This document shows positions 1 through 27,392 of a stretch of 34,486 bases of DNA, piece after piece. The stretch is from contig NW_003314424.1 of NCBI RefSeq assembly GCF_000143415.4, positions 1-34,486 on the forward strand, in the 5' to 3' direction. Origin of the DNA: Selaginella moellendorffii (lineage: Eukaryota; Plantae; Lycopodiophyta). How positions within the stretch are numbered: position 1 is the first letter of the stretch; every line of letters begins with the position of its first letter. Position numbers and translations under genes: made by a program. The notes under the pieces were generated by a model, which was given only the letters and a program-made list of their open reading frames with translations, searched no databases and was not told the origin of the DNA.

Positions 1-267
1 ACCCTAGACCCTAACCCCTAGGCCCTAAGCCCTAAACCCTAAACCTTAAACCCTAAACCCTAAACCCTAAACCCTAAACCCTAAACCCTAAACCCTAAAC
101 CCTAAACCCTAAACCCTAAACCCGGGCCCTAAATCCTAAACCCTAAACCCTAAACCCTAAACCCTAAACCCTAAACCCTAAACCCTAAACCCTAAACCCT
201 AAAACCCTAAACCCTAAACCCTAAACCCTAAACCCTAAACCCTAAACCCTAAACCCTAAACCCTAAA
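1..267. repeat. Terminal telomeric array (CCCTAAA)n, Arabidopsis-type TTTAGGG
   Basis: Near-continuous CCCTAAA heptamers from base 1, with a few variant units. The C-rich strand is on +, as expected for a left chromosome end. Confidence 0.97.
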
Positions 268-781
268 AGCCTCTATGTCGTAAAAAAAAGGTACTAGAGA
301 AATTCCTTAATAATATGAATGTTATTTAGTTTCATGAAAATACACTAAGGGTCAAATGAGTTAAATGACTTCTCCAGACTAGCAATGCCTCTTGCTACAC
401 CTTCACAATTAGATTCGTTAGAAAAAGATAACATTGAATAATATCTAAATGTTCTCACCATTAAGTTATATGTCTGGCTAATAGGAATGACGTTCATCTT
501 GGAAAGCTCACCACACGCTCAATGAACAAACAAATAGTGTGTGCGCGCATGCCATCGCTCTTCTTTAGCTTCAGATTCGGCTTGTTCACCTTGACAATGA
601 GATTTATTATACAACCAGATGGACTCAGTCTGGACACAAAGTCACCGCACTAGTCACCATGCCCCAGATATGTCTAGCCCCTGGACAAAAAACATATAAT
701 TTCATGTCATTTTCAAATACTTGAAAATTTGTACCTAGTCCCATTTTACTGAATAAATCCCACTTTAACGAAATAGAGCTT
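268..781. mobile_element. Terminal fragment of a putative TIR DNA transposon, truncated by the telomere (TIR 758-781)
   Basis: 758-781 TCCCACTTTAACGAAATAGAGCTT is the exact reverse complement of 34094-34117. A subterminal TCCCATTT echo lies at about 739-746. Composition switches from AT-rich to LINE coding sequence right at 781. Superfamily not assignable. Confidence 0.6.
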
Positions 782-2075
782 AGACCAAAATGTTGGGCGT
801 CCTTTTCGAGTCTTGAGAGGCGACATGCTGTTGCCAGCAGGGGACGAACAGGTCATGCCGATGGTGACGGATGACGAGGTCAAGGGTAGGATTCGAGTAA
901 TACGACAGGCTCCGAAGCAATCGGTGGTGGTTCAATCGTTGGCAGCACTAGAGGGGGAAGGCATTCTTAGATGGTGGCGACAGCAGCTCATCGAGGATCT
1001 GGATTGGGACCCCGCAGCATGGAAACGAGGAGCGAGAAGCTTCTTCTCCTTCGGCGTCAAGGAAGCAAGGGATGGTCTCTTGACCGGCAGGGAGGAGGCC
1101 CGAGGGGAGATCCCCAAGCTCTGGAAGAAATGGATCGAGCAAGGAGTTGAAGCAAATTAGGTGGTGGGCAACACGCTTGCGTTCTAGAAACTACCGGTAC
1201 AGGAGAAAGTCAAGGCCACCTCTTGGTTGGTGGCAAATAACGGGCTGCCGATAGGACAGTGGTTCCAGGAAGAAGCATGCCGACGGTGCAAGGAGTGTGG
1301 CGAGCTGGAGACAACGCGACATGTCCTATGGGAATGTGACGTGGCGAGAGAAGTTTGGCGACAGATCTTCAAGGCGACGCAGGAACTCGGCGATATTCCA
1401 GAGTTTGAGGCTCGGAGTGGGGATATCCTCCACTAGTTTGAGGGAGCTAGAGGCCCAGCCATTGGTCCAGCTTGGAGGCGTATTCGCTGCTACGGACGGC
1501 ACCGATGGAACATGCGAGTCCGGTGGGACGTGACAGGGGCTGAAGTTGGGATGTCAATCTGGGAGGCGTTGGGCCATGAGCGCTGGTCCATTTGGAGGGC
1601 AACAGGACTACAGGCACTTTGGGAGGCATGGAACCACTGTCGCTTTAATGGGCAGCAAGCGAGAATATCGGCAGTGGTGGTATCATGGTGGAGACTCACT
1701 CTTGCAGCGGTGCATCTTCACTACACCATCCTGAAAGAGCAGGCGAAACTGAGACAACTCGAGGAGTGGAGATCTAGGTGGCTCCCATGCTTCGGCAAAT
1801 TGGGAGGTGGCGAGATTCGCTGGCAATGGCGCCCCCCAGACTCTGTTCTAAGATCAGCTCGTGGGGGAGACTTGGACATCGACATGATTCGCTCGAGACG
1901 ACCATGTCCACTTCTACTCCAGGACTAGGTCTAGCTGTGGCATATGAGGATCACGTAGAGTAGCTCATTGAGAGGGCGGCACGCCAATTTTTTGTATTAG
2001 TCCCATTGGGACATGGGGAATGTACATACACGTTCAGCGATCTCGCCGGATTGCAGCACCGCGGGGAGTCTTTGA
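782..2075 (+). mobile_element. 5'-truncated non-LTR retrotransposon (L1/Tx1-like LINE): ORF2 C-terminus with zf-RVT zinc finger, plus 3' UTR; pseudogenised
   Basis: ORFs 813-1160, 1227-1436 and 1512-1928 share one frame, broken by TAG codons that are probably mutated TGG. The translation includes KLPVQEKVKATSWLVANNGLP...CKECGELETTRHVLWECDVAREVW (zf-RVT pattern) and ALWEAWNHCRFNG (W-x-W-xx-RN-xxx-F-like motif). Confidence 0.85.
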
Positions 2076-2157
2076 CCCTAAACGCCTAAACGCGCCTAAA
2101 CCCTAAACCCTAAACCCTAAAACCCTAAACTAAAACCCTAAACCCTAAACCCTAAAC
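2076..2157. repeat. Internal telomeric tract (CCCTAAA)n, about 11 units, same polarity as the terminal array
   Basis: CCCTAAA CGCCTAAA CGCGCCTAAA CCCTAAA... lies directly between the LINE 3' end and the truncated Gypsy RT. Confidence 0.95.
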
Positions 2158-4627
2158 TGGTGCTCCGGTCTTGCTTGTGAAGAAGAAGGACGGTTCAATG
2201 CGAATGTGTATTGACTACCGCACTTTGAACAAGAAGACAATGAAGGATAAGATGCCGATGCCACATGTGGATGATATCCTAGACAAGCTTGGTGAAGCAT
2301 AAGTGTTTACCAAGATTGATCTGAGGAGGGGATATCATCAGATTGCAATGGATGATGCATCTATCTCCAAGACGGCATTCAACACAAGCTTCGGACATTT
2401 TGAGTTTGCAATTATGCCGTTTGGTTTGACAAATGCACTGGCCACATTTACTCGGTTGATGACGGAGGTATTTGGGCGTTATCTTCATGAGTTTGTGGAG
2501 ATTTTCTTGGACGTCTTGTTTTTAGCAAGAATATGGAGGAGCATAAGGTGCATTTGTGCAAGGTTCTTTTGAGACAGCAAACTTTATGCAAAGAAGAGCA
2601 AATGTGAATTTGCAAAGTCGGAGGTGGAATATCTAGGCCATATTGTGACATCTCAGGGTGTCAAGACAGATCCAAGGAAGGTGGCTGTGGAAAACTAGCC
2701 TACACCGACTACAGTGGCCGAGTTGCGCAATTTTCTTGGTATGGCTAGTTACTACCGACGTTTCCAACTTAAGTTTGTAGAGGTGGCTATTCCTTTGACG
2801 CAGTTGTTACGCAAGAATGTGCCATTCGAGTGGAAGAAGCCACAAGAGGAGAGTTTTGTGGTGCTGAAACAATTGTTGAGCGAGACTCCAGTGCTTTGCA
2901 TTGCTGATCCATCAAAACCTTACGAGGTGACATGCAATGCGAGTGGTTATGCACTGGGAGGAGTTCTCATGCAAGAGGGACAGCCTATTGCATATGAGAG
3001 TCAAACTTTGAATTCTGCGGAGCAACACTATTCCACATATGAGCAAAAGTTACTCTCTATTGTTCATGCTTTGCGGACGTGGTGGCACTATCTTTATGGT
3101 GCAATGTTCGTGGTGTTGACAGATCACAAACCACTTGTGTATCTGTTCACACAGAAGGAGTTGAACACTAGGCAAGCTCGTTGGATGGTCAAACTCATGG
3201 AGTTTGGGGAGTTTCCTATTGAGCATCTTCCGGGAAAATTAAATGTGGTGGCATATGCTTTATCTCGTGTTTGTCATGTGACGACGTTACGAACACGATT
3301 TTGTCATCATTTGAGTAAGGTGGTCAGCGAGTTTGGGTAGTTGGTTGAGCATGCTTAGGCTCAGGATGCTGAGGTGGCCTCTTTGCAAGACCAGATGGAA
3401 GCCCCTTTCTCATTGGTGGATGGGATTCATTACTACAATGGCCGTGTATATTTGCCATGGGTGGATGCGTTAATTACTCAAGTTTTATTCCACTATCATG
3501 ATCGTCTAGAGGCCGGTCATTTTGGGGGGAAAAAGACGTATGAGTTGATTAAGCGCAACTTTTATTGGAGGAATATGAAGGCTGATATCCTCAAGTATTA
3601 TAAATCATGTGAGCTTTGTCAGCGGGTTAAGGTGCCACGGGAGAAGCCAGAGGGACTTTTGCAACCTTTACCTATTCCTCAGAGCCGTTGGTGTAGTATC
3701 TTTATGGACTTCATCACTTGTTTGCCACGAACACAGAGGCAAAAGGAGCAGGTATGGGTCATAGTGGATCGGTTGACGAAGTATGTGCGGTTGTTGGCTC
3801 TTCGGAAGACTGTCACTGCCTCAGACTTGGCTGCGGTTTACTTGGAGAAGGTTTTTCCTGATTTTGGTTTGCTGGAGGACATCATTAATGATCGAGATTC
3901 AAAGTTCACCAGTGGATTTTGGAAAAGCTTTGCAAAAGCTATGCAAGTGACTTTTAAACTCTCGAGTGGAGATCATCCTCAGACAAATGGGCAAACCGAG
4001 TGGGTGAATCAGGTGGTGGAGGATATGCTACGTTGTAGCATTGGTCAAAGGCAAGGACAGTGGGATCTATATCTTCTGTTGGTGCAATTTGCTTACAACA
4101 ATAGCCAACACAATGGAACCAAGCTAAGTCCTTATTTTGCCATGTTTGGAAGGCATCCTCGAACAACGGTGGAGTTGGGTTTGCATTTGAGTAAGGACGT
4201 TCAAGATAAGCTTGATTCCGAGGTGACTGATTTGGCCACAGAACTTGATGAGATTTTGGTGGTGTGCAAACGGAATTTACAAGCAGCTCAGGATAGAGCG
4301 GAGAAGTTTGCCAATGAGCATCGCCAATTCCGGGAATATAAGGTGGGTGATCTCATCTTTGTGCGTGTGATCTTTCCGTCAAGTGAGCGGCGGAACACCT
4401 TAGTGCCTTTACGGACAGGGAAGAGTGATAAACTTTCCCATCGATATGCTGGTCCATATGAAGTGCTGGAGTGCATTGGTAATGCAGCTTATCAAGTGCG
4501 GCTGCCAGCTGGGGTGAAAATTCATCCGGTATTTTATGTCAGCCAGTTGAAAGGCGTACTATCTCGGAGTGACGGGCCCAATGCCTCCTTGATGTATACG
4601 GCTGTGGAAGATGGACCAGGAGCTTGA
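2158..4627 (+). pseudogene. Ty3/Gypsy pol (RT-RNaseH-integrase) of element A, 5'-truncated at the telomeric tract, with stops and frameshifts
   Basis: Motifs in Gypsy order: [46 protein letters not shown] (RT); VTCNASGYALGGVLMQ, TDHKPL (RNaseH); H..GHFG..C..C, MDFIT, DRDSKFTS, HPQTNGQTE, GPY..HPVF (integrase with GPY/F). Confidence 0.95.
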
Positions 4628-4688
4628 GTAGGGTTCCCCAGAAAGGGTGATCACCGGTACAAGTCGTCCTTGGGACAAGGACTTTGTT

Positions 4689-4934
4689 GGGGGGGAAGAA
4701 TTGTTAGGCATCAGCTTTGACTATGTGGTCAACGTTAGTCAAAGGGAGGCTCAAGGGTATATTAAGGCATGTTAGGGTAAGGGACTTAACCTACCCTAGA
4801 GCTCACAATGGAGCGGCGGCACAGTGGAGCTTTTGAGGTAGCTCGGGGGTGGTTGGGTGGTGAGGAACCTCAAGAGGTGGCGTAGCATAATCTAGGGCGA
4901 CTAGATCTCTGTCTTTTTGTGCTGGATCATAACA
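4689..4934 (+). mobile_element. Polypurine tract (4689-4700) and 3' LTR (4702-4934) of Gypsy element A
   Basis: GGGGGGGAAGAA is followed by a 233-bp TGTTA...TAACA unit. The same unit recurs at 23781-24013 and inverted at 31898-32130. Confidence 0.85.
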
Positions 4935-5014
4935 CAAGCCCACTCCTAGGACCTTCTGATGCCAACACTAGTGGTGATATACTTCAGCACCAATAAAAGT
5001 GGGACTAAGGTACA

Positions 5015-5026
5015 GCTCCGATACCA
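5015..5026 (-). other. Primer-binding site (tRNA-Met type) of LTR element B
   Basis: The minus strand reads TGGTATCGGAGC, 3 nt after an LTR end (...TTTACA). This matches the canonical plant TGGTATCAGAGC with one change. Confidence 0.85.
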
Positions 5027-5029
5027 AAT

Positions 5030-6490
5030 TGTAAACGACTAAAGTTTCCATTCTACTTTCGTCACTTAACCACACCTTTGACCCCTTGGAGGAGTCTCAT
5101 TCACAACCTCCTTAAGTCCAATTTAGGACTTGGGACTTGCTAGTCCCAAGAATGGCATCCATGCCACTCATCCCTTGCACTTGGTCCAAGTGCTCCACGT
5201 GTCCAATCCCAAGACTGACACCCAAAGGTACCACTGACATATTGGCCCATTACACTAAGGCCATGCCCATTCACCTTTGCCACACTGGTGGTCCAATACG
5301 ACTTGCATCACAATCCCGTCTCTCCAAGACTGAGCTATCTGTCCACGAGTGGTCATCCTATATCCACTCCTTAGCATCCTTAGGATGCCCACAGAAATGG
5401 GGAATAGCCTTCCCCAACATCCCTTTGTCAGTTCCTGCCAAGTCCCTTTTCTGTCCATGGCCATGTTCACCAATATTGCTACTAGATCAAGGCCCGCAGG
5501 CCCGGCCACTAAGTCCCATTGTCCTCTGGGACTTCCTCACCATGTGACCATATCCGTAGTCACTACACTAGAGGACTTCTCCTCCTCCTTTCCCCCATTT
5601 GGGACTTCGGGACAACATTTCGGAACACCGTGGCCCTACGCGAGCCCCGTGGGTACTCTCCCCACCTTTCGCCTTTAGGTGCTCTAGCCATGGGCTTAGA
5701 GCGAGGTTCCGTTGAGCCACACCAGGTATCCAAGTAGGTAGTGCCACCCACACTTGGACTGGGAGCATCAGCCAGTCGATCTCCCGGGGGAACTAGAGCC
5801 GGCTCTTGAACACTTCACCAAGCTACCCCGCTTGTCGGTTCGTATTCACTCTAGTCTTGGACTTCCCAGTGGTCAGTTCATCACCCAACACTGGGTCTGG
5901 CCTTCCTGGGCCAAATTGGCCTTTCCTGGCCAAATTGGCTCCATTGCAGTCCTCCCCCTCACTATACTTTTGGAGCTCACCAAACCCCCCAGGGTCTGGG
6001 AGACGAACGCTTTGGGCTTTCACCCTCTTAGACTCGAACTCGGACTTGGACTCAGACTCAGACTCGGCCTCGGCCGCGGTCTCGGTCCCGGTCTCGGTCC
6101 CGGTCTCAGTCCTGGTCTCAGTCTCGGTCCCGGTCTCCTCGGTCTCGGTCTCGGTCTTGGTCTCAGTCCCGGTCTCTCCATCTCGGACTCCATCTCGGAC
6201 TCCACCTCGGACTCCAACTTGGGTCCATCTCAGACTCCAACTTGGGTCCATCTCGGACACTTCCACGTGTCATGCGTTGGTCCTTTTGGGTCCCTTTTTT
6301 GGAGCCTCGCTTATTGCTCGCTTCATGCTCGTTCCTTGAGCACTCTGTTGGGAGTTCCATTCCCGCTCTCAACCTTTCAAGTCAAAGCCTTTTAGTCCAA
6401 ACGTGTTACGCTTGTTTGGCTTTTGCTTCGGCCACTACCACGTGGCACCCTTTCGGCTCCACTTTGGGGCTTAGGGATTTGCGTCTCAGA
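5030..6490 (-). mobile_element. 5' LTR (about 1.46 kb) of LTR retrotransposon family B, containing GGTCTC and GGACTCCATCTC minisatellites
   Basis: The ends are TGTAA...TCTCA(G/C)A with an adjacent PBS. It is homologous to the TSD-flanked solo LTR at 16643-21362. Gypsy A is inserted about 90 bp into its leader, in the opposite orientation. Confidence 0.85.
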
Positions 6491-6499
6491 CTGTGGTGT

Positions 6500-7360
6500 C
6501 ATCATTTCACCCTTTTGCTCCTCTCTATGGAACCTTCATTTCTACCATCTCTTGGTTTATTTATTGTGTGACACTTTGTTTTCTTGCTTTGTATGGAGGT
6601 TTTTGTCCCTAGCTCGTCCATGCATTATTGCTTGCAACCTTGCTCCAAAGTTCACATCTAACCCTCTTCTGTGGTGGTTCATCATCATCTTCTTCTTCTT
6701 TTCATGATGAGGAAGGACTCTTGTCTTGAATTTCATCACTTGTCACTTTTTGTCTCACTATTACCCTCTTCATTATCATTGTGTTGTACCTTGTCTTCAT
6801 CGTCCTCACACTCCTAATCATTTGACGTTGATGTTAATGAGGATGTATCGCTTAATGTATGTTTATCATCAACAACCTGATCGACATTATGTCTATCATT
6901 TGGATTGTAGTTGGAGAGGTCATGGAATGGATGCTCCAATTCTTCTATTTCCCTCTGATAAAAAAGTCTCTCAATTAGAATCCTATTGTTGACTATCCAC
7001 AACAACAATGCCGGTTAGTTTGTCCTTGAGGATTCCATAAGCAGTGAAGGTTGTATCAATTCCTTCTCTACAGACTGTATTGTAATTGATGGAACCCTAA
7101 ACTCTGAGTCTTGAACAATATTCCTGATGAATGTCTTTTGAAGCTCTGTATAAATGGCCTTCCTTCCCTATTCATGTCTTTGTTAGGAATCTCCTCTTCT
7201 TTGATGACAATCCCATAGACTATTGGACTGTTTGGGTTGGTAAGATCCACCAACACTAGATCATCATCTTGTATCTCTAACGTCCACTTTTGTGGTTGTG
7301 TGGAGTTGCAGCCTCTTTCACTCTGATGGACTCATGTAGAAGTGTTTTAGATTGCTGGGC
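6500..7360 (-). pseudogene. Highly degenerate unidentified coding relic with an acidic low-complexity tract; possibly a DNA-transposon accessory ORF
   Basis: The minus strand is purine-rich with D/E-rich pieces (EDDEDK, KEEEDDDEPPQKRVR) and LVDLTNPNSPIVYGIVI, but has many stops. Mirror at about 29460-30320. Confidence 0.3.
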
Positions 7361-7426
7361 CTAGAAACATGAAAGAACTTATTAGAATTACTTAAAATAT
7401 TTTTGAAATGGGAGAGAATGGATCCT

Positions 7427-8010
7427 AGTGTGAGGCCTCATGCTAAGTGAAAGGGGTAATGGAAGTAATTCTATAGCAGGTTAATAGCATGAGGACTCAA
7501 GAATGGATAGGGTGTATGAAAGGGGTAGTGGAGGTAATTCTATAGGAGGTTATTAGCATAAGGCCTCACACTTAAGAATGGATGGGGTGTGTTTGCCAAT
7601 TCCTTGATAATAATATTACTTGTCCCATGGACAGATGTTCAAGCAAGATTACCATCAAGAAACTAGACAAACCAAAATCTTTTTAGCACTTTAGCATAAG
7701 GCCTCATGCTAATCCTTAAGCATGAGTCCAGTCACAATGTGTTGATGGAGATTACTAGCATGAGGCCTCACACTTAGATTGCTTGTGATATTTTTCCTAG
7801 TTTCTTGATGACAATCTTATTCACTTATGCAATAAACATGCATGCAAAGGAGATTGGTGTCGAGAAACTAGGCTAGAGGAGGTGGGTGGGCTTTTTTTCA
7901 TGGTGTGAGGCCTCACACTAATGTTTTTGTGTGAGGTTGGACACCATCCAGATTGGATTAAGGTATTATGGAGGGATGAAGTCATTTTCTTGGCATGAGG
8001 CCTCATGCTA
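7427..8010. repeat. Cluster of about 7 dispersed 18-bp palindromes, consensus AGYRTRAGGCCTCAYRCT
   Basis: Copies at about 7427, 7486 (partial), 7556, 7693, 7757, 7903 and 7993, with irregular spacers. Confidence 0.85.
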
Positions 8011-8643
8011 TTCATTTATATACATTTGTTTCTTACTACTTTAGGTGTCTAGGTGAGTAATCTTACTCGCCAATTCATCGTTGGGGTAAATGTTCAAACA
8101 ATATTGCTCCCCAAACACTTGCAAGACTGGGGAAACAATGGAAGGTTGTACGTTTAGATGCTTGTTTAGCCATTGCCATATTTGTAGTGTCATTTTTATT
8201 TCACTTTAAGTTCACAAGTTACACACTTTATTTCTATTCCTATCTATAGTGCCTAAGGAAACTGTTTGAAGGCAGCTATGTCGTGAATGTGACTTCGGGT
8301 ATCGAAAGTTACCTGTCGACCAGTCCTTACAGACACTCTTACCTTACTGCCACGACGGCAGGAGGTCCGTATTGCTGGACCCTTTATCAGTCACTCTTGT
8401 GCTAGTGGAGTTAACTGGGCATTTCGAGTGTACTTAGACCGGACGAGCATAAGGACGGAATTCCTACGTGTTATTAGCTAAGCATACTTAGCCCGGTAAG
8501 GAGTTCCCGTCTCGTTATGTCTTGCCCTGGCTAGTGACAAGAACCCTCGCGTATTGAGATTGGTCCCTCAATATCGCTACATGATAGCTTACCGTGTCTG
8601 CCAAACACCCTCGCTATCATGCCCTTTGTGCTAGTCTCATTTC

Positions 8644-8917
8644 AGCACACGCAAGCAGTGTTTGACTCCATGGAGCGACACGATTGCCACTTGTGGGTCA
8701 TTATGTTCTTGGCACACGCCCAAGAAGGGCATCTCGCCACTACCAAGGATCGAGGCAAGGTTACTGCTGCATGGTGGATTTCTTGGGGCGAGCTGGGTGT
8801 GTGGAAGAGGCCGAGGAACTTGTGAGGAGTATGCCTTACAAGCCAGTTTCAGTGGATTGGATGTGCTTGCTGGGAGCAAAGTTTTGTGCTAGAACAAGCT
8901 TTAAGTGTAGATTCTAG
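8644..8917 (+). pseudogene. PLS/E-class PPR gene remnant, 5' part deleted in this arm
   Basis: QAVFDSMERHD..W.IM..AHAQEGHL and YCCMVDFLGRAGCVEEAEELVRSMPYKPVSVDWMCLLGA lie in different frames. Confidence 0.85.
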
Positions 8918-9119
8918 GAATTCTACTAGCAAATAGTAGCAATTTTGTTTGAAACTAGTGTGAGTGTAGATTCTGTGTCCTCGTGATTAAAGAGGGTATT
9001 CTTTGACAGATCATCATGTATGATTAAAGAGAAAATTCTTTGCTCATTTCCAATGGTCGAGTACAAGAGCCAGCTTTTGGACTATATAAATTTAGGGTTC
9101 TTGGAGGTTAGTGGCGCAG

Positions 9120-10429
9120 TGATGGCACAGGGCTGCGCAGCAATCTCCAGTGCAGGCGGCCATGGCAGGAGCTCAGCGGCTCGCTGGGCGACCTGGGCAC
9201 ATTCATCCCAATCGTCATGGCTGTAGCTCTCGTCAATGGCATGGATCTTGGTCTCTCATCACCACGAGCATCTACAACGTTCTCACCAGCGTGCTCTTTG
9301 GCGTGCCAATGCCTGTCCAGCCCATGAAATCCATCACAGCGGTGGCCTTCACCGAATCCAAGCATCTCAGTGTGGATGAGATCATGGCCGCGGGGATCAG
9401 TGTGTCTGCGATCGTGTTTGTGCTTGGAAGCACGGGCTTGATCACAGGTCGTGGCTTGGATCGTGCCATTGCCGGTGGTTCGTGGCATCCAGCTTGCACA
9501 TGGGCTCTTTTGCAGTCAAGGCTGTCAAGTACGTGATGAAGGATCAAAATCTCTCTAGGGACAAGGCAATGGGTGATCGACCATGGCTGGGCTTGGATGG
9601 AATTCTCCTCGCAGTGATTTGCTTCGCATTCATCGTGCTAGTGAATGGATCCGGCGAGGGCTACGAGTACTTCGTGACGAACAGTGAAGGTGATCGTCAT
9701 CACGATGATCATGAAGAGCACCGTGAAGAACATCAAGCGAGATCGTCAAAGCTCGTGAAGTTTTTCCAGAGGATCCTGACTGCCTTAGCAGTGTTCGTGC
9801 TCGGGATCATCCTGGTGTTCGTGAGGAGGCCACACATTCTCAAGGAGCTCCAGTTTGGCCCAGCCACGCCACGGATCACTAGAATCTCTTCCCACGACTG
9901 AAAGATGGTTTGTGAGAGCCACAATCCCACAGCTCCCTCTCACTATCCTCAACTCGGTGGTGGCGGTTTGCAAGCTCTCGAGCGATCTCTTCCCGGCCAA
10001 GAAGGACGCCGTGACTCCGACCAAAGTCTCGGTGAGCGTGGGGCTCATGAACTTGGTGGGCTGCTGGTTTGGAGCTCTCCTGGTTTGCCATGGCGCTGGA
10101 GGACTGGCCGGGCAGTATCGTTTCGGAGCCACGAGTGGGGTAGCGGTGGCAAGCTTGTGCTGGGGCTTCTCTTGGGAGGCTCACTGGTGAGAATTCTGCC
10201 AGCATTTCCAGTGGGACTGCTGGGGATCTTGCTGCTCTTCTCCGGGGTGGAGCTGGCGATGGCATGCCCGGATTGAACTAGTAGGAGGGACTTGTTTGTG
10301 ATGCTCTGCTGCATTGCCATCTCGCAGGGATCCAATCTCGCGGTGGGATGTGTTTGTGCCATACTCTTGTATGTGCTGCTCCAGGCGAGAGAGATGGATT
10401 GTTGGGTGGTTGCAAGCTTTTGGTTGTGA
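9120..10429 (+). pseudogene. Molybdate transporter (MOT1/MOT2, former SULTR5 family) pseudogene, intronless and frameshifted
   Basis: Hallmark motifs ELSGSLGDLGTFIPIV, FGVPMPVQPMKSI, IPQLPLTILNSVVAVCKLSSDLFP, SVGLMNLVGCWFGA..VCHGAGGLAGQYRFG and FPVGLLGILLLFSGVELAMA are spread over several frames, with an in-frame stop. Confidence 0.92.
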
Positions 10430-10896
10430 GGTTCCTCAATGTAAATAAAGCTTTGAAAAGTTTGGGAGAACATCATGGTAACACACTTGCCTGAAACCAC
10501 ATCCATGCCATCTTCTCAAAAGCCTGCGAGGCCTGGCTACAACCACCGTTAGCGGCATATGAAGCCAGGGATGTTATCTGCAACAAAGACGGTGCAGAGT
10601 AAGTGGGGCTTCATCGAGGTCTTCATGTCGAAATTGATTCAGAGTGTAAATTTTAAAACTATGTACTTTTCACTCAAGAGTAAAATGGATTCCATTCCTC
10701 ACCGTGTGGAATGAGAGCAATTCGGCCCGGCCTAGCAAACGAGAGAGTGAAACATTGGAGGGATGTGCGCTTCTATATCCCAACCTTTTCCACGAGTCCC
10801 GCCTTGTCGTAGCACTTGGCTTGGCTCAGGCCTGTATAGCAGGTATAATTTTGGGGTGCCGCTGTGCTCTTTGAACTTTGGGTAACGCTTTACCAT

Positions 10897-11781
10897 TCCA
10901 TCTCGGGTCCATCTCAGACTCCATCTCGGGTCCATCTCAAACTCCATCTCAGTCCATCTCGGACTCCATTTCAGGTCCATTTTGGATTTCATCTTGGACT
11001 CCATTTCAGACTCCATCTTGGGTCCATCTCGGACTCCATTTTGGTCCCTCTCAGACTCCACCACGTGTCATGTAATGGTCCTTTTGTGTCCTTTTTCTAG
11101 AGACTCTTTTATTGCTCGCTTCATGCTCATTCCTTGAGCACTCCGAAAGGAGTTCCACTCTCGCTCTCGACTCTTCAAGCCGGAGCTTTTAGTCCAAATA
11201 TATTACGCTCATTTAGCTTTCACTTTGGCCACTACTACGTGGCACCCTTTCGGCTCTACTTTGGGGTTTAGGGATTTATGTCTCACACTATACTTTTGCA
11301 ACTTACCAAACCCCCTAGGGTCTAGGATATGATTGTGTTGGCCTTTCACCCTTGGACTTAGACTTGGACTCGAACTCAGACTCGGACTCGGGCCCGGTCT
11401 TGGCTCTAGTCTCAGTCTTGGTCTCAGTCTCGGTCCTCATCTTAGATTCCTTCCTAGACTCTTCAAACTCCATCTTGAACTCCATCTCAGACTCCTCGGA
11501 TTCTATCTTGGACTCCTTCTTGGACTCCATCTCAGATTCCTTTTTAGACTGGATCTCAACACTTCCATGTGTTAGTCCTTCTTGTGTCCCTTTTTAGAGA
11601 CTCATTCACTGATTGTTTCATGTTCATTCCTTAAGCATTTTTTTCAGAGTTTCATTCCTGCTCTCAACTTTCCAAGTCAAAGATTTTAGTCCAAACATGT
11701 TATGTTTGTTGGACTTCTTCAACCACTACCATATAGCACTCTTTTGGCTCTATTTTGGGGCTTAGAAATTCATGTCTCACA
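10897..11781 (-). mobile_element. Two tandem partial, more diverged copies of the family-B LTR (10897-11287, 11288-11781)
   Basis: Both end in TCTCACA on +, and both carry the GGACTCCATCTC minisatellite and the CCACTAC..CGTGGCACCC-like block. Confidence 0.8.
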
Positions 11782-11994
11782 ATCTCGTGATGCTGGCATT
11801 TTCTTGTTTTCTTTGGCAAATCCTAAAGAGATTAATTTTTTTTCAAAGATCATTTATTTGAAGTAGCAATTCATGTTGATGTTGATGTTGAGATTTCTTC
11901 ATCCACTATTTCTTGTAGTGGAGCTTGACTAAGTGGGCCTTAAAAGTCAAAGCCCTTAACAATTGCCCCACAAAAGCATTTATGTAAGCTCTTA

Positions 11995-12841
11995 AGATTG
12001 AGTTTGGACTTCTCAAGAGGTCACCCAAAATGGAATTGCTAAATGTCAATCAACATATGGTGCGATTCCTCTCGCCAACCAATAGAGTCAAACTTGAGAC
12101 CCTCTCTAATACCAAATGTAAACTTATAAGGTTGGACTTCCCGAAATGTCACCCAACCCAATACTATTTAAACCCAAGGACACTTAACCCCAAGTATTTC
12201 AATACCCTTAACTTACTTTTATTCATAGGTTTTTTTCCTTTATATTTAAATCCCATATAAGCAACCAAAAGGAACAATTTGAAAGATAATCTATAGGGTT
12301 CAAATATAGAAGGAAAATGTTTATGAATAAGAGTACACCCCCTTTTCTAATCGGTTAAAGGTCTTGAAATATTTGGGGTTAAATGTCCTTCGGTTTAAAT
12401 AATACTATATTAAATGACCTCTCGGGAAGTCCAAATTCAAGAACTTACATTTGGTATTAAAGAGGGTCTCCAATCTGACTTTGTTGGTTGGGTAAGGGAA
12501 TTGCATCACATGTTAATTGACATTTGGCAGATCCACTTTGCTCCGACTGAGCTTGACCCGAGGGGTAGGGTGTCAAGAGAGCAGGGCTCTCAGGAGAGTT
12601 ATGGCTCTCAACTTTTATTCACAAGGGTATGAACTTGCAAGAAAGCATATTGGATTATAAGCAACCAAAGGGAACAACTTGAGAAATGATCCATAGGGTT
12701 CAAATATAAAGGGAAAGGGACTATGAATAAGAGTGCACTTCCTTTTCCAATCGGTTAAAGGTTTTGGGATATTTGGGGTTAAGTATCTTTAGATTTGAAT
12801 AATACTGAGTTGGGTGACCTCTTAGGAAATTTAAATTCAAG
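11995..12841. repeat. AT-rich foldback element with long imperfect inverted repeats (MULE/MITE-like)
   Basis: About 12037-12210 is the imperfect reverse complement of about 12355-12529. About 12255-12440 is directly repeated at about 12655-12840. The outer ends (about 11997-12027 and 12810-12841) are also inverted. Confidence 0.7.
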
Positions 12842-12959
12842 TTGTTGTCCTCAAGTTGTTCTCTTTAATTCTTTACAATTTTTTATCACTATACTAATTG
12901 TGAATGTTTTCCCCTATCCTTCACATTGGTTTGTAAGAAAAGCTCTAGTCCTTCACTAG

Positions 12960-14241
12960 AGTGTCAAGAGTGACATTGGAATGCCTTCTAGATGGACCAT
13001 GACCTAGCAAATAAGTGTTGGATTTGCTGCTTGCAGCAAATGCCTAGATAAGGCAATTGTTGTGGACTATAGAGCTTGGCTCACCCAAGTGCTAGAGCAA
13101 TATAGTGCTTAATATTTGTGTATCCACTATCTCTTGTATACTCTACTGAAATCTCTTAACAAGTTGAGGAAGGGCTAGTACATACCCACACTGGTAACAA
13201 CTGAGAAAGAAGCACTTTAGTTAGCAAGTGCCCTCTCAATGCCTAAGTGACCCTAAACTCTAAACCTACACCTTTTCTTCTAACCAAGTTCCTATACTTT
13301 AATATATGGTCAAAGATAGTGCTTAATAGGCCACCACTTTGGCAAACAAAAGGGCACTAGGGGTAGTTTGAGCTCTCACCTATGGTGTAATGACAATGGA
13401 ATAAAATGGAGTCAAGATTTTATACTTGACATAAGGCCTCAATAAATGGCCCCAACCACTCACTTGACTGCATCACTATCATCTACTATATGAGGGCTAG
13501 GATTTCCATGGATCAGCTGTATTGCCGCTGCTGCCACAATGGCCCTATCAAGGAATCTCTCCAGCTCGTGATGAGGGAGGAGGGATTGGAGCTCTACGAG
13601 GACATGATCCTTGGGCCGATGTATTACACGAGTAAGATGTTTGTATTCATCCAATAATGAACAGGAGGCCATGTCCACAACCGCCGATGGCACATAATCC
13701 TTGTCTAGAAAATCCACAAATGCTGAAACAACATGCTTATTAGAATCATGAGAAGAGAGTGAAGAAGGAAGAAGATCTTGAGAAAGGGTATTAGCATCAG
13801 CCATAGAACTTCCCGGGGGTGAACAACACTAAAATCATATATCTGAAGCTTCAAAGCCCACTAAACAGTATGACCAACTAGGTTCTTCCTCTTTAATAAT
13901 GAAGTAATGGCAACATGATCACCTTTTAGTAACATTTTGAGAACCATGTAAATATGCATGAAGTTTCTCAAAACCCTAGACTGCTACTAAACACTCTTTC
14001 TTTGTCATGGAGTAGTTCACCTCCGTTAGTTGTAATGTATGACTTATATATGCAATGGAATGGCATTAACCAGGCACACTCAAGCTCTCTTGCATCAACA
14101 CTCCTCAAAGATCAATATGAGAAGCATTCACACGCAAAATGAAAGGTTGAATGTGGTTAAGATATGCCAAAACTGGAGGAGTCGTCAATAACTTTTTGAG
14201 ATCCATAAATTCCCACTCACAATCCGGAGACTAGATGAAAG
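12960..14241 (-). pseudogene. Inverted copy of the 3' part of old degenerate Gypsy element C (RNaseH and downstream remnants)
   Basis: Mirror of 21363 to about 22640 (coordinate sum 35604). ORF-track translations are identical. Confidence 0.7.
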
Positions 14242-15517
14242 TGTGAGACACAAAATCCCTAGGCCCCAAAGTGGAGCTGGAAAGGGTGCCACGTGGTAGT
14301 GGCCGAAGTGAAAGCCAAACGAGCGTAACACGTTTGGACTAAAAGCTCCGACTTGAAAGGTCGAGAGCGGGAGTGGAACTCCCAACAAAGTGCTCAAGGA
14401 GCGAGCACAAAGCGAGCAATAAGCAAGGCTCCAAAAAGGGACCCAAAAAGGACCAACACATGACACGTGGAAGTGTCCGAGATGGAGTCCGAGACGGACC
14501 CTAGTTAGAGTCCGAGATGGACCCGAAGTGGAGTCCGATATGGAGTCTGAAGTGGAGTCCGAGATGGAGTCCGATATGGAGCCTGAGATGGACCCGAAGT
14601 GGAGTCCGAGGTGGACAAAGACGGAGTCCGAGATGGACCTGAGATGGAGTCCGAGTTGGACCCGAGATGGAGTCCGAGATGGAGTCCGAGGTGGACCGAG
14701 ACGGAGTCCGAGATGGACCCGAGATGGAGTCTGAGATGGAGTCTGAGATGGAGTCTGAGATGGACCCGAGATGGAGTCCGAGGTGGAGTCCGAGGTGGAC
14801 CAAGACGGAGTCCGAGATGGACCCGAGACGGAGTCCGAGATGGACCGAGACGGAGTCCGAGATGGAGTCCGAGATGGACCGAGATGGAGTCCGAGATGGA
14901 GTCCGAGAAGGACCCGAGATGGAGTCCGAGATGGACCGAGACAGAGTCCGAGATGGAGTCCGAGATGGACCGAGATGGAGTCTGAGATGGACCCGAGACG
15001 GAGTCCGAGATGGACCGAGATGGAGTCCGAGATGGAGTCCGAGATGGACCGAGATGGAGTCCGAGATGGAGTCCGAGAAGGACCCGAGATGGAGTCCGAG
15101 ATGGACCCGAGATGGAGTCCGAGGTCGAGACCGAGACTGGACCAAGACCGGGACCGAGACCGAGACCAGGACCAAGACCGGGACCGAGACCGAGACCGAG
15201 GCCAAGGCTGAGACCGAGCCCGAGCCCGAGTCCGAGTCTGAGTCCGAGTCTGAGTCTGAGTCTGAGTTCGAGTCTGAGAGGGTGAAAGCCCAAAGCGTTC
15301 GTCTCCCAGACCCTGGGGGGTTTGGTGAGCTCCAAAAGTATAGTAACGGGGAGGACTGCAGTGGAGCCAGTTTGGCCAGGAAAGGCCAGTTTGGCCCAGG
15401 AAGGCCAGACCCAGTGTTGGGTGATGAACTGACCACTAGGAAGTCCAAGACTAGAGTGAATACGGACCGACAAGCGGGGTAGCTTGGTGAAGTGTTCAAG
15501 AGTCGGCTCTAGTTCCC
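14242..15517 (+). mobile_element. Partial family-B LTR with expanded minisatellite; inner end of the left palindrome arm
   Basis: Starts TGTGAGACA and mirrors 20099-21362. It breaks abruptly at ...CTCTAGTTCCC|AAAATAATAAAGG. Confidence 0.9.
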
Positions 15518-16642: not shown

Positions 16643-19600
16643 TGTAAGTGACTAAATTTTCCATTCTACTTTAGTCACTTAACCACACCTCCGACCACTT
16701 GGAGGAGTCTCATTCACAACCTCCATCAGTCCAATTCAGGACTTGGGACTTGCTAGCCCCAAGAATGGCATCCATGCCACTCAACACTTGCACCTGGTCC
16801 AAGTGCTCCACGTGTCTGGTCCCAAGACCGACACCCAAAGGTACCACTGACATCTCAGCCCGTTACGCTAAGGCCATGCCCATTCACCTTTGCTGCACTA
16901 GTGGTCCAATACCACTTGCATCACCATCCCGTCTCTCCAAGACTGGGCCATCTGTCCACGAGTGGTCATCCTAGATCCACTCCTTAGCATCCTTAGGATG
17001 CCCACAGACCTGGGGAATCGCCTTCCCCAAAGTCCCTTTGTCAGTTCCTACCAAGTCCCTTTCTGCCCCTGGCCGTGTTTGCCAACACTGTCACTGGATC
17101 GAGGCCCACAGGCCCGACCACTAAGTCCCATGGTCCTCTGGGACTTCCTCACCACACGACTGTGTCCTTGGTCACTACCCCAGAGGACTGCTCCTCTTCC
17201 TTGGGACAACATTTTGGAACACCGTGGCCTTACGCGAGCCACCTGGGTACTCTCCCCGCCTTTCGCCTTTAGGTGCTCTAGCCATGGGCTTAGAGCGAGG
17301 TTCTGTTGAGCCACGCCTGGTATCCAAGTAGGTAGTGCCACCCACACTTGGACTGGGAGCATCGGCCAGTCGATCTCCCGGGGGAACTAGAGCCGACTCT
17401 TGAACACTTCACCAAGCTACCCCGCTTGTCGGTCCGTATTCACTCTAGTCTTGGACTTCCCAGTGGTCAGTTCATCACCCAACACTGGGTCTGGCCTTCC
17501 TGGGCCAAACTGGCCTTTCCTGGCCAAACTGGCTCCACTGCAGTCCTCCCCCTTACTATACTTTTGGAGCTCACCAAACCCCCCAGGGTCTGGGAGACGA
17601 ACGCTTTGGGCTTTCACCCTCTCAGACTCGAACTCAGACTCAGACTCGGACTCGGACTCAGACTCGGACTCGGGCTCGGGCTCGGTCTCAGCCTTGGCCT
17701 CGGTCTCGGTCTCGGTCCCGGTCTTGGTCCTGGTCTCGGTCTCGGTCCCGGTCTCGGTCCAGTCTCGGTCTCGACCTCGGACTCCATCTCGCGTCCTTCT
17801 CGGACTCCATCACGGACTCCATCTCGGTCCATCTCGGACTCCATCTCGGACTCCGTCTCGGTCCATCTCGGACTCCGTCTCGGGTCCATCTCAGACTCCA
17901 TCTCGGTCCATCTCGGACTCCATCTCGGACTCTGTCTCGGTCCATCTCGGACTCCGTCTCGGTCCATCTCGGACTCCGTCTCGGGTCCATCTCAGACTCC
18001 ATCTCGGTCCATCTCGGACTCCATCTCGGACTCTGTCTCGGTCCATCTCGGACTCCATCTCGGGTCCTTCTCGGGGGAACTAGAGCCGACTCTTGAACAC
18101 TTCACCAAGCTACCCCGCTTGTCGGTCCGTATTCACTCTAGTCTTGGACTTCCCAGTGGTCAGTTCATCACCCAACACTGGGTCTGGCCTTCCTGGGCCA
18201 AACTGGCCTTTCCTGGCCAAACTGGCTCCACTGCAGTCCTCCCCGTTACTATACTTTTGGAGCTCACCAAACCCCCCAGGGTCTGGGAGACGAACGCTTT
18301 GGGCTTTCACCCTCTCAGACTCGAACTCAGACTCAGACTCAGACTCGGACTCAGACTCGGACTCGGGCTCGGGCTCGGTCTCAGCCTTGGCCTCGGTCTC
18401 GGTCTCGGTCCCGGTCTTGGTCCTGGTCTCGGTCTCGGTCCCGGTCTTGGTCCAGTCTCGGTCTCGACCTCGGACTCCATCTCGGGTCCATCTCGGACTC
18501 CATCTCGGGTCCTTCTCGGACTCCATCTCGGACTCCATCTCGGTCCATCTCGGACTCCATCTCGGACTCCATCTCGGTCCATCTCGGACTCCGTCTCGGG
18601 TCCATCTCAGACTCCATCTCGGTCCATCTCGGACTCCATCTCGGACTCTGTCTCGGTCCATCTCGGACTCCGTCTCGGTCCATCTCGGACTCCGTCTCGG
18701 GTCCATCTCAGACTCCATCTCGGTCCATCTCGGACTCCATCTCGGACTCTGTCTCGGTCCATCTCGGACTCCATCTCGGGTCCTTCTCGGGGGAACTAGA
18801 GCCGACTCTTGAACACTTCACCAAGCTACCCCGCTTGTCGGTCCGTATTCACTCTAGTCTTGGACTTCCCAGTGGTCAGTTCATCACCCAACACTGGGTC
18901 TGGCCTTCCTGGGCCAAACTGGCCTTTCCTGGCCAAACTGGCTCCACTGCAGTCCTCCCCCATACTATACTTTTGGAGCTCACCAAACCCCCCAGGGTCT
19001 GGGAGACGAACGCTTTGGGCTTTCACCCTCTCAGACTCGAACTCAGACTCAGACTCGGACTCGGACTCAGACTCGGACTCGGGCTCGGGCTCGGTCTCAG
19101 CCTTGGCCTCGGTCTCGGTCTCGGTCCCGGTCTTGGTCCTGGTCTCGGTCTCGGTCCCGGTCTCGGTCCAGTCTCGGTCTCGACCTCGGACTCCATCTCG
19201 CGTCCTTCTCGGACTCCATCACGGACTCCATCTCGGTCCATCTCGGACTCCATCTCGGACTCCGTCTCGGTCCATCTCGGACTCCGTCTCGGGTCCATCT
19301 CAGACTCCATCTCGGTCCATCTCGGACTCCATCTCGGACTCTGTCTCGGTCCATCTCGGACTCCATCTCGGGTCCTTCTCGGGGGAACTAGAGCCGACTC
19401 TTGAACACTTCACCAAGCTACCCCGCTTGTCGGTCCGTATTCACTCTAGTCTTGGACTTCCCAGTGGTCAGTTCATCACCCAACACTGGGTCTGGCCTTC
19501 CTGGGCCAAACTGGCCTTTCCTGGCCAAACTGGCTCCACTGCAGTCCTCCCCGTTACTATACTTTTGGAGCTCACCAAACCCCCCAGGGTCTGGGAGACG

Positions 19601-21362
19601 AACGCTTTGGGCTTTCACCCTCTCAGACTCGAACTCAGACTCAGACTCAGACTCGGACTCAGACTCGGACTCGGGCTCGGGCTCGGTCTCAGCCTTGGCC
19701 TCGGTCTCGGTCTCGGTCCCGGTCTTGGTCCTGGTCTCGGTCTCGGTCCCGGTCTTGGTCCAGTCTCGGTCTCGACCTCGGACTCCATCTCGGGTCCATC
19801 TCGGACTCCATCTCGGGTCCTTCTCGGACTCCATCTCGGACTCCATCTCGGTCCATCTCGGACTCCATCTCGGACTCCATCTCGGTCCATCTCGGACTCC
19901 GTCTCGGGTCCATCTCAGACTCCATCTCGGTCCATCTCGGACTCCATCTCGGACTCTGTCTCGGTCCATCTCGGACTCCGTCTCGGTCCATCTCGGACTC
20001 CGTCTCGGGTCCATCTCAGACTCCATCTCGGTCCATCTCGGACTCCATCTCGGACTCTGTCTCGGTCCATCTCGGACTCCATCTCGGGTCCTTCTCGGGG
20101 GAACTAGAGCCGACTCTTGAACACTTCACCAAGCTACCCCGCTTGTCGGTCCGTATTCACTCTAGTCTTGGACTTCCCAGTGGTCAGTTCATCACCCAAC
20201 ACTGGGTCTGGCCTTCCTGGGCCAAACTGGCCTTTCCTGGCCAAACTGGCTCCACTGCAGTCCTCCCCGTTACTATACTTTTGGAGCTCACCAAACCCCC
20301 CAGGGTCTGGGAGACGAACGCTTTGGGCTTTCACCCTCTCAGACTCGAACTCAGACTCAGACTCAGACTCGGACTCAGACTCGGACTCGGGCTCGGGCTC
20401 GGTCTCAGCCTTGGCCTCGGTCTCGGTCTCGGTCCCGGTCTTGGTCCTGGTCTCGGTCTCGGTCCCGGTCTTGGTCCAGTCTCGGTCTCGACCTCGGACT
20501 CCATCTCGGGTCCATCTCGGACTCCATCTCGGGTCCTTCTCGGACTCCATCTCGGACTCCATCTCGGTCCATCTCGGACTCCATCTCGGACTCCATCTCG
20601 GTCCATCTCGGACTCCGTCTCGGGTCCATCTCAGACTCCATCTCGGTCCATCTCGGACTCCATCTCGGACTCTGTCTCGGTCCATCTCGGACTCCATCTC
20701 GGGTCCTTCTCGGACTCCATCTCGGACTCCATCTCGGTCCATCTCGGACTCCATCTCGGACTCCGTCTCGGTCCATCTCGGACTCCGTCTCGGGTCCATC
20801 TCGGACTCCGTCTTGGTCCACCTCGGACTCCACCTCGGACTCCATCTCGGGTCCATCTCAGACTCCATCTCAGACTCCATCTCGGGTCCATCTCGGACTC
20901 TGTCTCGGTCCACCTCGGACTCCATCTCGGACTCCATCTCGGGTCCAACTCGGACTCCATCTCAGGTCCATCTCGGACTCCGTCTTTGTCCACCTCGGAC
21001 TCCACTTCGGGTCCATCTCAGGCTCCATATCGGACTCCATCTCGGACTCCACTTCAGACTCCATATCGGACTCCACTTCGGGTCCATCTCGGACTCTAAC
21101 TAGGGTCCGTCTCGGACTCCATCTCGGACACTTCCACGTGTCATGTGTTGGTCCTTTTTGGGTCCCTTTTTGGAGCCTTGCTTATTGCTCGCTTTGTGCT
21201 CGCTCCTTGAGCACTTTGTTGGGAGTTCCACTCCCGCTCTCGACCTTTCAAGTCGGAGCTTTTAGTCCAAACATGTTACGCTCGTTTGGCTTTCACTTCG
21301 GCCACTACCACGTGGCACCCTTTCCAGCTCCACTTTGGGGCCTAGGGATTTTGTGTCTCACA
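16643..21362 (-). mobile_element. Family-B solo LTR with 5-bp TSD, expanded internally to 4.7 kb
   Basis: TGTAAG...TCTCACA is flanked by CTTTC at 16638-16642 and 21363-21367. The host Gypsy frame resumes after it (SPDCEWEFMDLKKLLTTPPVLAY...VLMQE). Confidence 0.92.
17379..21120. repeat. Tandem array of LTR-internal units starting at 17379, 18072, 18788, 19380 and 20096 (periods 693, 716, 592, 716 bp), each with 6-, 11- and 12-bp minisatellites
   Basis: Each unit begins CGGGGGAACTAGAGCCGACTC. The repeated MNTSPSY ORF starts in the track give the same spacings. Confidence 0.95.
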
Positions 21363-22640
21363 CTTTCATCTAGTCTCCGGATTGTGAGTGGGAATTTATG
21401 GATCTCAAAAAGTTATTGACGACTCCTCCAGTTTTGGCATATCTTAACCACATTCAACCTTTCATTTTGCGTGTGAATGCTTCTCATATTGATCTTTGAG
21501 GAGTGTTGATGCAAGAGAGCTTGAGTGTGCCTGGTTAATGCCATTCCATTGCATATATAAGTCATACATTACAACTAACGGAGGTGAACTACTCCATGAC
21601 AAAGAAAGAGTGTTTAGTAGCAGTCTAGGGTTTTGAGAAACTTCATGCATATTTACATGGTTCTCAAAATGTTACTAAAAGGTGATCATGTTGCCATTAC
21701 TTCATTATTAAAGAGGAAGAACCTAGTTGGTCATACTGTTTAGTGGGCTTTGAAGCTTCAGATATATGATTTTAGTGTTGTTCACCCCCGGGAAGTTCTA
21801 TGGCTGATGCTAATACCCTTTCTCAAGATCTTCTTCCTTCTTCACTCTCTTCTCATGATTCTAATAAGCATGTTGTTTCAGCATTTGTGGATTTTCTAGA
21901 CAAGGATTATGTGCCATCGGCGGTTGTGGACATGGCCTCCTGTTCATTATTGGATGAATACAAACATCTTACTCGTGTAATACATCGGCCCAAGGATCAT
22001 GTCCTCGTAGAGCTCCAATCCCTCCTCCCTCATCACGAGCTGGAGAGATTCCTTGATAGGGCCATTGTGGCAGCAGCGGCAATACAGCTGATCCATGGAA
22101 ATCCTAGCCCTCATATAGTAGATGATAGTGATGCAGTCAAGTGAGTGGTTGGGGCCATTTATTGAGGCCTTATGTCAAGTATAAAATCTTGACTCCATTT
22201 TATTCCATTGTCATTACACCATAGGTGAGAGCTCAAACTACCCCTAGTGCCCTTTTGTTTGCCAAAGTGGTGGCCTATTAAGCACTATCTTTGACCATAT
22301 ATTAAAGTATAGGAACTTGGTTAGAAGAAAAGGTGTAGGTTTAGAGTTTAGGGTCACTTAGGCATTGAGAGGGCACTTGCTAACTAAAGTGCTTCTTTCT
22401 CAGTTGTTACCAGTGTGGGTATGTACTAGCCCTTCCTCAACTTGTTAAGAGATTTCAGTAGAGTATACAAGAGATAGTGGATACACAAATATTAAGCACT
22501 ATATTGCTCTAGCACTTGGGTGAGCCAAGCTCTATAGTCCACAACAATTGCCTTATCTAGGCATTTGCTGCAAGCAGCAAATCCAACACTTATTTGCTAG
22601 GTCATGGTCCATCTAGAAGGCATTCCAATGTCACTCTTGA
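21363..22640 (+). pseudogene. Continuation of old Gypsy element C (RNaseH, degraded integrase region)
   Basis: LKKLLTTPPVLAYLNHIQPFILRVNASHIDL*GVLMQE fits the RT connection and RNaseH start. The right boundary is approximate. Confidence 0.7.
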
Positions 22641-22762
22641 CACTCTAGTGAAGGACTAGAGCTTTTCTTACAAACCAATGTGAAGGATAGGGGAAAACAT
22701 TCACAATTAGTATAGTGATAAAAAATTGTAAAGAATTAAAGAGAACAACTTGAGGACAACAA

Positions 22763-23609
22763 CTTGAATTTAAATTTCCTAAGAGGTCACCCAACTCAGT
22801 ATTATTCAAATCTAAAGATACTTAACCCCAAATATCCCAAAACCTTTAACCGATTGGAAAAGGAAGTGCACTCTTATTCATAGTCCCTTTCCCTTTATAT
22901 TTGAACCCTATGGATCATTTCTCAAGTTGTTCCCTTTGGTTGCTTATAATCCAATATGCTTTCTTGCAAGTTCATACCCTTGTGAATAAAAGTTGAGAGC
23001 CATAACTCTCCTGAGAGCCCTGCTCTCTTGACACCCTACCCCTCGGGTCAAGCTCAGTCGGAGCAAAGTGGATCTGCCAAATGTCAATTAACATGTGATG
23101 CAATTCCCTTACCCAACCAACAAAGTCAGATTGGAGACCCTCTTTAATACCAAATGTAAGTTCTTGAATTTGGACTTCCCGAGAGGTCATTTAATATAGT
23201 ATTATTTAAACCGAAGGACATTTAACCCCAAATATTTCAAGACCTTTAACCGATTAGAAAAGGGGGTGTACTCTTATTCATAAACATTTTCCTTCTATAT
23301 TTGAACCCTATAGATTATCTTTCAAATTGTTCCTTTTGGTTGCTTATATGGGATTTAAATATAAAGGAAAAAAACCTATGAATAAAAGTAAGTTAAGGGT
23401 ATTGAAATACTTGGGGTTAAGTGTCCTTGGGTTTAAATAGTATTGGGTTGGGTGACATTTCGGGAAGTCCAACCTTATAAGTTTACATTTGGTATTAGAG
23501 AGGGTCTCAAGTTTGACTCTATTGGTTGGCGAGAGGAATCGCACCATATGTTGATTGACATTTAGCAATTCCATTTTGGGTGACCTCTTGAGAAGTCCAA
23601 ACTCAATCT
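22763..23609. repeat. Mirror copy of the foldback element
   Basis: Reverse complement of 11995-12841. Confidence 0.7.
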
Positions 23610-23682
23610 TAAGAGCTTACATAAATGCTTTTGTGGGGCAATTGTTAAGGGCTTTGACTTTTAAGGCCCACTTAGTCAAGCT

Positions 23683-24013
23683 GTGGAAGATGGACCAGGA
23701 GCTTGAAGAGGATTCCCCAGAAAGGGTGATCACCGATACAACTCGTCCTTGGGACAAGGACTTTGTTGGGGGGGAAGAATTGTTAGGCGCCAGCTTTGAC
23801 CTCGTGGTCAACATCGGTCAAAGGGAGGCTCAAGGGTATATTAAGGCATGTTAGGGTAAGGGACTTAACCTACCCTAGGGCTCACAGTGGAGCGGCGGCG
23901 CAGTGGAGCTTTTGAGGTAGCTCGGGGGTGGTTGGGTGGTGAGGAACCTCAAGAGGTGGCGTAGTATAGTCTTGGGCAACTAGATCTTTGTTTTTTTGCG
24001 CCGGATCATAACA
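23683..24013 (+). mobile_element. 3' end of a third Gypsy-A copy (about 100 bp internal, PPT, LTR 23781-24013), right arm only
   Basis: Homologous to 4604-4934 with its own variants. It occupies the place of left-arm 11610-11921. Confidence 0.9.
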
Positions 24014-26599: not shown

Positions 26600-26801
26600 C
26601 TGCGCCACTAACCTCCAAGAACCCTAAATTTATATAGTCCAAAAGCTGGCTCTTGTACTCGACCATTGGAAATGAGCAAAGAATTTTCTCTTTAATCATA
26701 CATGATGATCTGTCAAAGAATACCCTCTTTAATCACGAGGACACAGAATCTACACTCACACTAGTTTCAAACAAAATTGCTACTATTTGCTAGTAGAATT
26801 C

Positions 26802-27243: not shown

Positions 27244-27392
27244 TAGTTTCTCTCGACACCGAAGCTAGCCTCTCATGAGATTAGAGAGAAGGGAGAGATT
27301 AGGGAAATTCTCGATGGCATCCTTCCAAAGTAGCCCCTAGCTTGGTTTGTTCATTCTAGTGAGCCAATGCATTGCAAAGAGCTTTTCCTAGC

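Follow-up and report, generated by a model that had tools for sequence, protein, structure and literature searches.

Organization of the chromosome end

The window, a stretch of 34,486 nucleotides of Selaginella moellendorffii DNA that begins at position 1 of contig NW_003314424.1, opens with a telomere and continues inward through a series of mobile-element pieces, interrupted by a second tract of telomere repeats. From the tip inward its features are the following.

1–266, plus strand: terminal telomere, (CCCTAAA)n, found by pattern scan and by TRF (38 units, 92% match, extending to 267 in the TRF call)
267–781, plus strand: complete MITE-like element of 515 bp with terminal inverted repeats (TIRs), lying between the terminal telomere and the LINE and forming no part of the LINE
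782–2036, plus strand: L1-type LINE, 5'-truncated and decayed, recognized by its reading frame, a Pfam zf-RVT match and homology to the protein P0001 and its locus L001 (see below)
783–1928, plus strand: C-terminal region of ORF2, within the LINE
1197–1358, plus strand: zf-RVT CCHC domain, within ORF2
1929–2036, plus strand: 3' UTR of the LINE
2037–2074, plus strand: 3' part of a putative telomere-docking tail, 38 bases, also found in non-LINE contexts
2075–2156, plus strand: internal, former telomere tract of 82 bp, found by TRF and pattern scan, in the orientation of the terminal tract
2157–4627, plus strand: Ty3/gypsy pol, broken in its RT domain, recognized by the pol domains downstream and by other copies that extend upstream of 2158

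In the terminal tract the C-strand reads inward from the contig end, as it does at a left chromosome end. The internal tract (2075–2157 in the TRF call) comprises 11.3 units with a TRF score of 100, and for both tracts the number of such matches expected by chance in the pattern scan is 0. Its opening units are variants, CCCTAAA CGCCTAAA CGCGCCTAAA, as had been noticed in an initial sequence-only reading of this DNA. The pol sequence that adjoins the tract is interrupted within the RT domain at 2157/2158; sequence upstream of this point is present in other copies (loose ends in four of four sequencing runs), and RT_RNaseH, Integrase_H2C2, rve and SH3_Tf2-1 matches follow downstream. The junction of gypsy and telomere lies at 2156/2157, the T at 2157 being assignable to either side, and the interruption of pol at 2157/2158 is most likely the point at which a broken chromosome was healed.

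Read on the minus strand, 5' to 3' toward the tip, the order is gypsy, (TTTAGGG)n, tail and LINE, so that all sequence to the left of 2075 is joined to the former G-strand at its 3' end. The LINE turns its 5' end to the tip, and the internal tract is oriented like the terminal one (TRF). This is the polarity of priming on a G-strand overhang, and in this respect the sequence-only reading, which had described a LINE joined by its 3' end to a former telomere, was correct.

The LINE and the 38-base tail

The segment 782–2036 can be assigned to the 3' part of an L1-superfamily LINE because of its zf-RVT domain, its homology to P0001 and L001, and the structural neighbourhood of P0001 to L1 ORF2p. 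Positions 783–1928 form one reading frame, broken by stops at 1158, 1185 and 1434, in which the ORF piece 1188–1433 carries zf-RVT (PF13966) at 1197–1358 with 32.8 bits against a curated cut-off of 27.5 (E 1.1e-7). In a protein search of 1.8 billion representatives the sole real relative was P0001, the S. moellendorffii “uncharacterized protein LOC112341605”, which has the domains RVT_1 and zf-RVT. At the DNA level, window positions 948–1769 are 69% identical to the locus of this protein (L001, GL377652.1), where the LINE frame goes on across the region homologous to window 1437–1800. The nearest solved structure to P0001 is human L1 ORF2p (E 5e-24, against 1e-7 for R2); the RT itself is missing from the 5'-truncated window copy. 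Farther relatives, of about 40% identity, combine APE (PF03372), RT and zf-RVT, and both the window copy and L001 are truncated at the 5' end. As protein queries, the C-terminal piece of ORF2 gave no small relatives and P0001 gave no additional S. moellendorffii copies. The L1-type ORF2 end that had been suspected from the letters alone is thereby borne out.

The window copy is, by comparison with other copies, genuinely truncated at 782: a contig of run X6 that differs from it by 1 mismatch in 222 bases extends upstream of 782 with LINE coding sequence matching P0001. It is also decayed, since its three stops take the place of Q, W and W in P0001, and in contigs of other copies 1435 A>G restores the tryptophan codon at the 1434 stop. 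No poly(A) or A-rich 3' end is present, again as first described, and the end of the LINE reads ...acacgttca|gcgatctcgcc...; this does not exclude membership in the L1 superfamily, because some site-specific LINEs lack poly(A). At L001 the LINE is broken off before its own 3' end by a copy of the TIR element.

Two minor observations concern the family as a whole. The LOC112341605 gene model leaves the LINE ORF at its C-terminus, and the conserved ORF2 frame runs on for about 45 codons, to the TIR element (L001 8640–8775); the annotated C-terminus is probably wrong. Differences between 782–2036 and other copies are mostly C>T and G>A, an excess that would fit a silenced copy whose methylated cytosines have been deaminated.

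The relation of the LINE to the telomere repeats was approached by comparing window positions 300–3000 (2,701 letters) with the contigs of four public runs from the same organism (X1, X2, X6 and X7). The LINE had been taken to pass from its 3' UTR straight into the telomere, and here the comparison leads to a different description: the last 38 bases before the repeats, 2037–2074, also occur in non-LINE contexts, and their contig count exceeds that of the LINE body, which in X6 and X7 is covered by just one to three. In one X7 contig, with 255 unlike letters upstream, and in two X1 contigs the match to the window starts exactly at 2037, the non-LINE sequence before it reading ...CACAAAGTGGTGCC or ...GGATTGCACAAAGTGGTGCC; this non-LINE context is known from these three contigs and 30 upstream letters. 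A single substitution, 2067 A>T, is found in every covering contig (26 in X1, 13 in X2, 5 in X6 and 1 in X7). In X1 contigs, moreover, stubs of the tail of 11–14 bases stand between telomere repeats (joints 2121->2062 and 2121->2068). A tail followed by (CCCTAAA)n, with truncated tail copies among the telomere repeats, is what characterizes telomere-attaching Penelope-like elements (PLEs). The segment 2037–2074 behaves as a unit separate from the LINE.

Its secondary structure points the same way. The 38 bases contain an inner hairpin, GCGATCT/CGCC/GGATTGC, together with GCACCGC, which is the 3' strand of an outer stem. When the non-LINE upstream sequence is added, a two-tier hairpin of 7+7 bp results, GTGGTGC-C-GCGATCT / CGCC / GGATTGC-A-GCACCGC, whose 5' half is ..GTGGTGCC and which has a folding energy of -32.4 kcal/mol (z -2.7, with none of 200 shuffles as stable). 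For LINE and tail as joined in the window the fold is not significant (z +0.4), and the 5' arm of the hairpin is divided at 2036|2037, where the LINE meets the tail. That the structure is intact in the non-LINE context and loses half of itself beside the LINE points to a tail already in place when the LINE arrived, and does not fit ownership of the tail by the LINE. A likeness between the last bases of the LINE and the upstream part of the tail was also considered and dismissed as not significant, 601 of 5000 shuffles being as good.

In an X6 contig a LINE copy 3.3% diverged from that of the window crosses 2036|2037 by 19 bases, to 2055, and a more diverged LINE subfamily is common with the window from 2001 onward; two LINE contigs depart from the window sequence, at 2034 and 2042, and not every LINE copy runs into exactly this tail. 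The first two observations speak for a site-specific insertion, the two departures against a strict specificity. In at least two diverged copies the LINE passes at its 3' end directly into the tail, and this continuity, together with the lack of poly(A), could be understood if the LINE family owned the tail; it would then be an L1-type family directed to telomeres, its 3' end annealing to the overhang, and the non-LINE contexts would represent non-autonomous partners sharing the tail. LINE/SINE pairs with common 3' tails are, after all, well established. Such ownership is nevertheless quite improbable, as the hairpin is complete in the non-LINE context only and is interrupted where the LINE begins, more contigs extend over the tail than over the LINE body, and the relatives of the family possess an APE endonuclease, which is unexpected in elements that prime on chromosome ends.

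Less probable still, and indeed very unlikely, is a one-time origin of the junction, whether an L1 inserted at an uncapped telomere independently of an endonuclease or a LINE 3' end came to lie beside telomere repeats by end-joining or recombination. The window does hold just one such junction, and the chromosome end is clearly rearranged, with a TIR element and an extensive inverted duplication in addition to the healed break; yet many contigs show the junction sequence 2037–2074 joined to telomere repeats, and this recurrence disfavours a unique repair product. Two origins had first been suggested for the locus, a LINE family that targets telomeres or one terminal retrotransposition of an L1; both are disfavoured by the non-LINE contexts, the hairpin and the contig counts. 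The accompanying idea of a tail that primes on the telomere fares better: such a tail was probably involved, although it appears not to be that of the LINE.

The most likely owner of the tail would be the endonuclease-deficient PLE published for S. moellendorffii, and the LINE may habitually target this site within it. The window contains no PLE RT, no hammerhead ribozyme and no complete tail; Rfam returned neither a hammerhead nor any other RNA family in the window, even at E<=5 over 1–2600, and a metagenome scan with the tail and telomere as query gave no match. Attached copies may end upstream of the hammerhead motif, and its absence is weak evidence.

A possible history and its relation to known systems

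The observed anatomy and polarity, the independence of the tail with its higher contig count and the split hairpin favour, with reasonable though limited confidence, a history in which a telomere-docking retroelement, probably an endonuclease-less PLE, lengthened the chromosome after a break had been healed, and an L1-type LINE inserted later in the tail of this element. A break within the Ty3/gypsy pol (2157/2158) would first have been healed by telomerase, of whose product 2075–2156 would be the remnant. The RNA of a telomere-attaching retroelement, with a C-strand-like 3' end, would then have annealed to the G-strand overhang and been reverse-transcribed onto the end, leaving as its trace the tail 2037–2074 and possibly also the variant first repeat units. 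Within this tail, at 2036|2037 and in the same orientation, an L1-type LINE would have inserted, and it is because of its position in the tail that the LINE appears to end in telomere repeats. The LINE itself probably did not prime on the chromosome end. Subsequently, sequence distal to 782 may have been lost or replaced, and the end would have been capped anew, these last steps following one another in a presumptive order. The 515-bp TIR element now adjoins the LINE, and the new telomere starts exactly at the outer TIR of this element.

A different route to the same arrangement would be a chimera formed in trans, in which a transcript made up of LINE, half tail and telomere repeats, read from a LINE already lodged in a docking tail, was copied onto the end by the RT of the telomere-attaching element, the LINE fragment itself thereby extending the chromosome. 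The polarity fits this route as well, and the upstream half of the tail is indeed missing from the window; under insertion into a resident tail, the truncation at 782 accounts for the lack of this half and of any target-site duplication. An X1 contig, in which telomere repeats and TTGCTTCAG are followed by the LINE from about 810 (joint 2119->810), represents a second junction of telomere and 5'-truncated LINE elsewhere, of the kind that terminal addition followed by telomerase capping would yield. This evidence, however, is a single contig joint, which erosion into a LINE in situ followed by healing explains equally well, and recognition by the RT of a half tail that lacks the 5' strand of the outer stem is doubtful. 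The chimeric route is accordingly considered unlikely, and the broader idea to which it gives rise, that L1-type LINE fragments with a half tail hitch-hike on PLE-like end extension and so add DNA to the tips of plant chromosomes, must be regarded as a speculative one of comparably low probability.

Insertion of a LINE into the tail of a telomeric retroelement, the history preferred here, has partial parallels in several known systems. Elements at the ends of chromosomes such as Drosophila HeT-A/TART, as well as endonuclease-independent L1 insertions at dysfunctional mammalian telomeres, have the 3' end toward the centromere and the 5' end toward the tip. The LINE described here has the same polarity; it differs in that telomerase repeats are present and active here and in that the LINE is probably not the end-priming element. 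TRAS and SART elements, for their part, have the telomere repeat itself as their cleavage target and end in poly(A). The LINE family considered here resembles those telomere-specific Bombyx elements (PMC7265360, PMC2868851) in its association with telomere repeats and, to judge by its distant relatives, probably in being of APE type. Direct joining to the repeats at a fixed phase, as expected for elements that cut them, is not what is seen in the window, where the LINE has no poly(A) and is separated from the repeats by 38 non-telomeric bases of another unit, shared with non-LINE contexts.

The closest counterpart of the end-priming component is already known, namely the telomere-attachment mechanism of PLEs. 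Endonuclease-deficient PLEs attach to G-rich overhangs via reverse-complement telomeric repeats beside a hammerhead ribozyme (PMC8557442), and such elements reside at the telomeres of S. moellendorffii (PMC8557442, PMC4209133, PMC12477314), a finding that these papers attribute to Gladyshev and Arkhipova (2007). As in Athena/Coprina-type telomeric PLEs, the 3' end of the tail is here followed by C-strand telomere repeats with the polarity expected of priming on an overhang, very short units that lack their 5' part occur among telomere repeats, and the species matches. Unlike those elements, the window sequence has no PLE RT or hammerhead, and what is left are 38 bases of tail interrupted by a LINE.

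For the insertion step, the Tx1 clade offers the best comparison. LINEs of this clade insert in other transposons, Xenopus Tx1 in Tx1D and crocodilian Tx1-Mar in Mariner-N4_AMi (PMC4494074). The LINE of the window likewise appears to lie at a defined point in another mobile element, whose sequence then looks like the 3' end of the LINE itself. It differs in its host, a lycophyte, the Tx1 clade having been described from animals, and in its target, the tail of a telomeric retroelement, and its own clade can be placed to the level of “L1 superfamily” only. The literature searched yielded no plant or telomeric-PLE example of a LINE nested in a transposon at a defined site.

Among plants, transposons associated with telomeres are rare, the standard example being the PLEs of S. 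moellendorffii. If it is true that an L1-type LINE habitually lands in the docking tail of a PLE, chromosome ends would constitute a nested niche occupied by two classes of retroelements, and the arrangement would be a plant counterpart of the targeting of one transposon by another that is known from Tx1. Taken on its own the locus is a decayed relic; the window would nonetheless record, base by base, a healed break, an extension and a second capping, and is useful in this respect for the study of chromosome-end repair in plants.

The TIR element, an inverted duplication and repeat arrays

The 515-bp element is bounded by the TIRs AAGCCTCTATGTCGTAAAA and AAGCTCTATTTCGTTAAAG and has a copy, 98% identical, at L001 8775–9289 (S. 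moellendorffii GL377652.1). Its contig depth is very high, and the right flanks differ in other copies. In the window it is flanked by telomere on one side and by the LINE on the other, the terminal telomere starting exactly at the outer TIR (...CCCTAA|AAGCCTCTATG). No target-site duplication accompanies the element, either in the window or at the L001 copy. A break made by a transposase at the end of the element and then healed by telomerase is a speculative explanation of the present terminus.

At L001, too, the element meets a LINE of this family, and does so with the same TIR and likewise with no target-site duplication; in both copies the motif ACCAAAA lies in the right flank, 2–3 bases from the end of the element; this shared motif could reflect a target preference or a recombination hotspot.

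Farther inward the window contains an inverted duplication, 2735–15517 / 20099–34096, with arms of about 12.8 kb that are 98.5–99.6% identical, with indels, and that are separated by a 4.6-kb spacer of tandem arrays. The imperfect identity of the arms argues against a fold-back artefact of assembly. The right arm ends exactly at a TIR of the 515-bp element's family (34094–34120, 27 bases, 96%), and the duplication may have arisen by alternative transposition or by a breakage-fusion-bridge process.

A 12-base unit, TCCATCTCGGAC or its complement, is repeated in extensive arrays at 5898–6258, 10897–11532, 14475–15278, 17621–21129, 24065–24822 and 30562–30801, and also at L001 12393–12995. These arrays show higher-order periods of 23, 57, 79, 91 and 101 and probably belong to an abundant repeat or LTR-like sequence.
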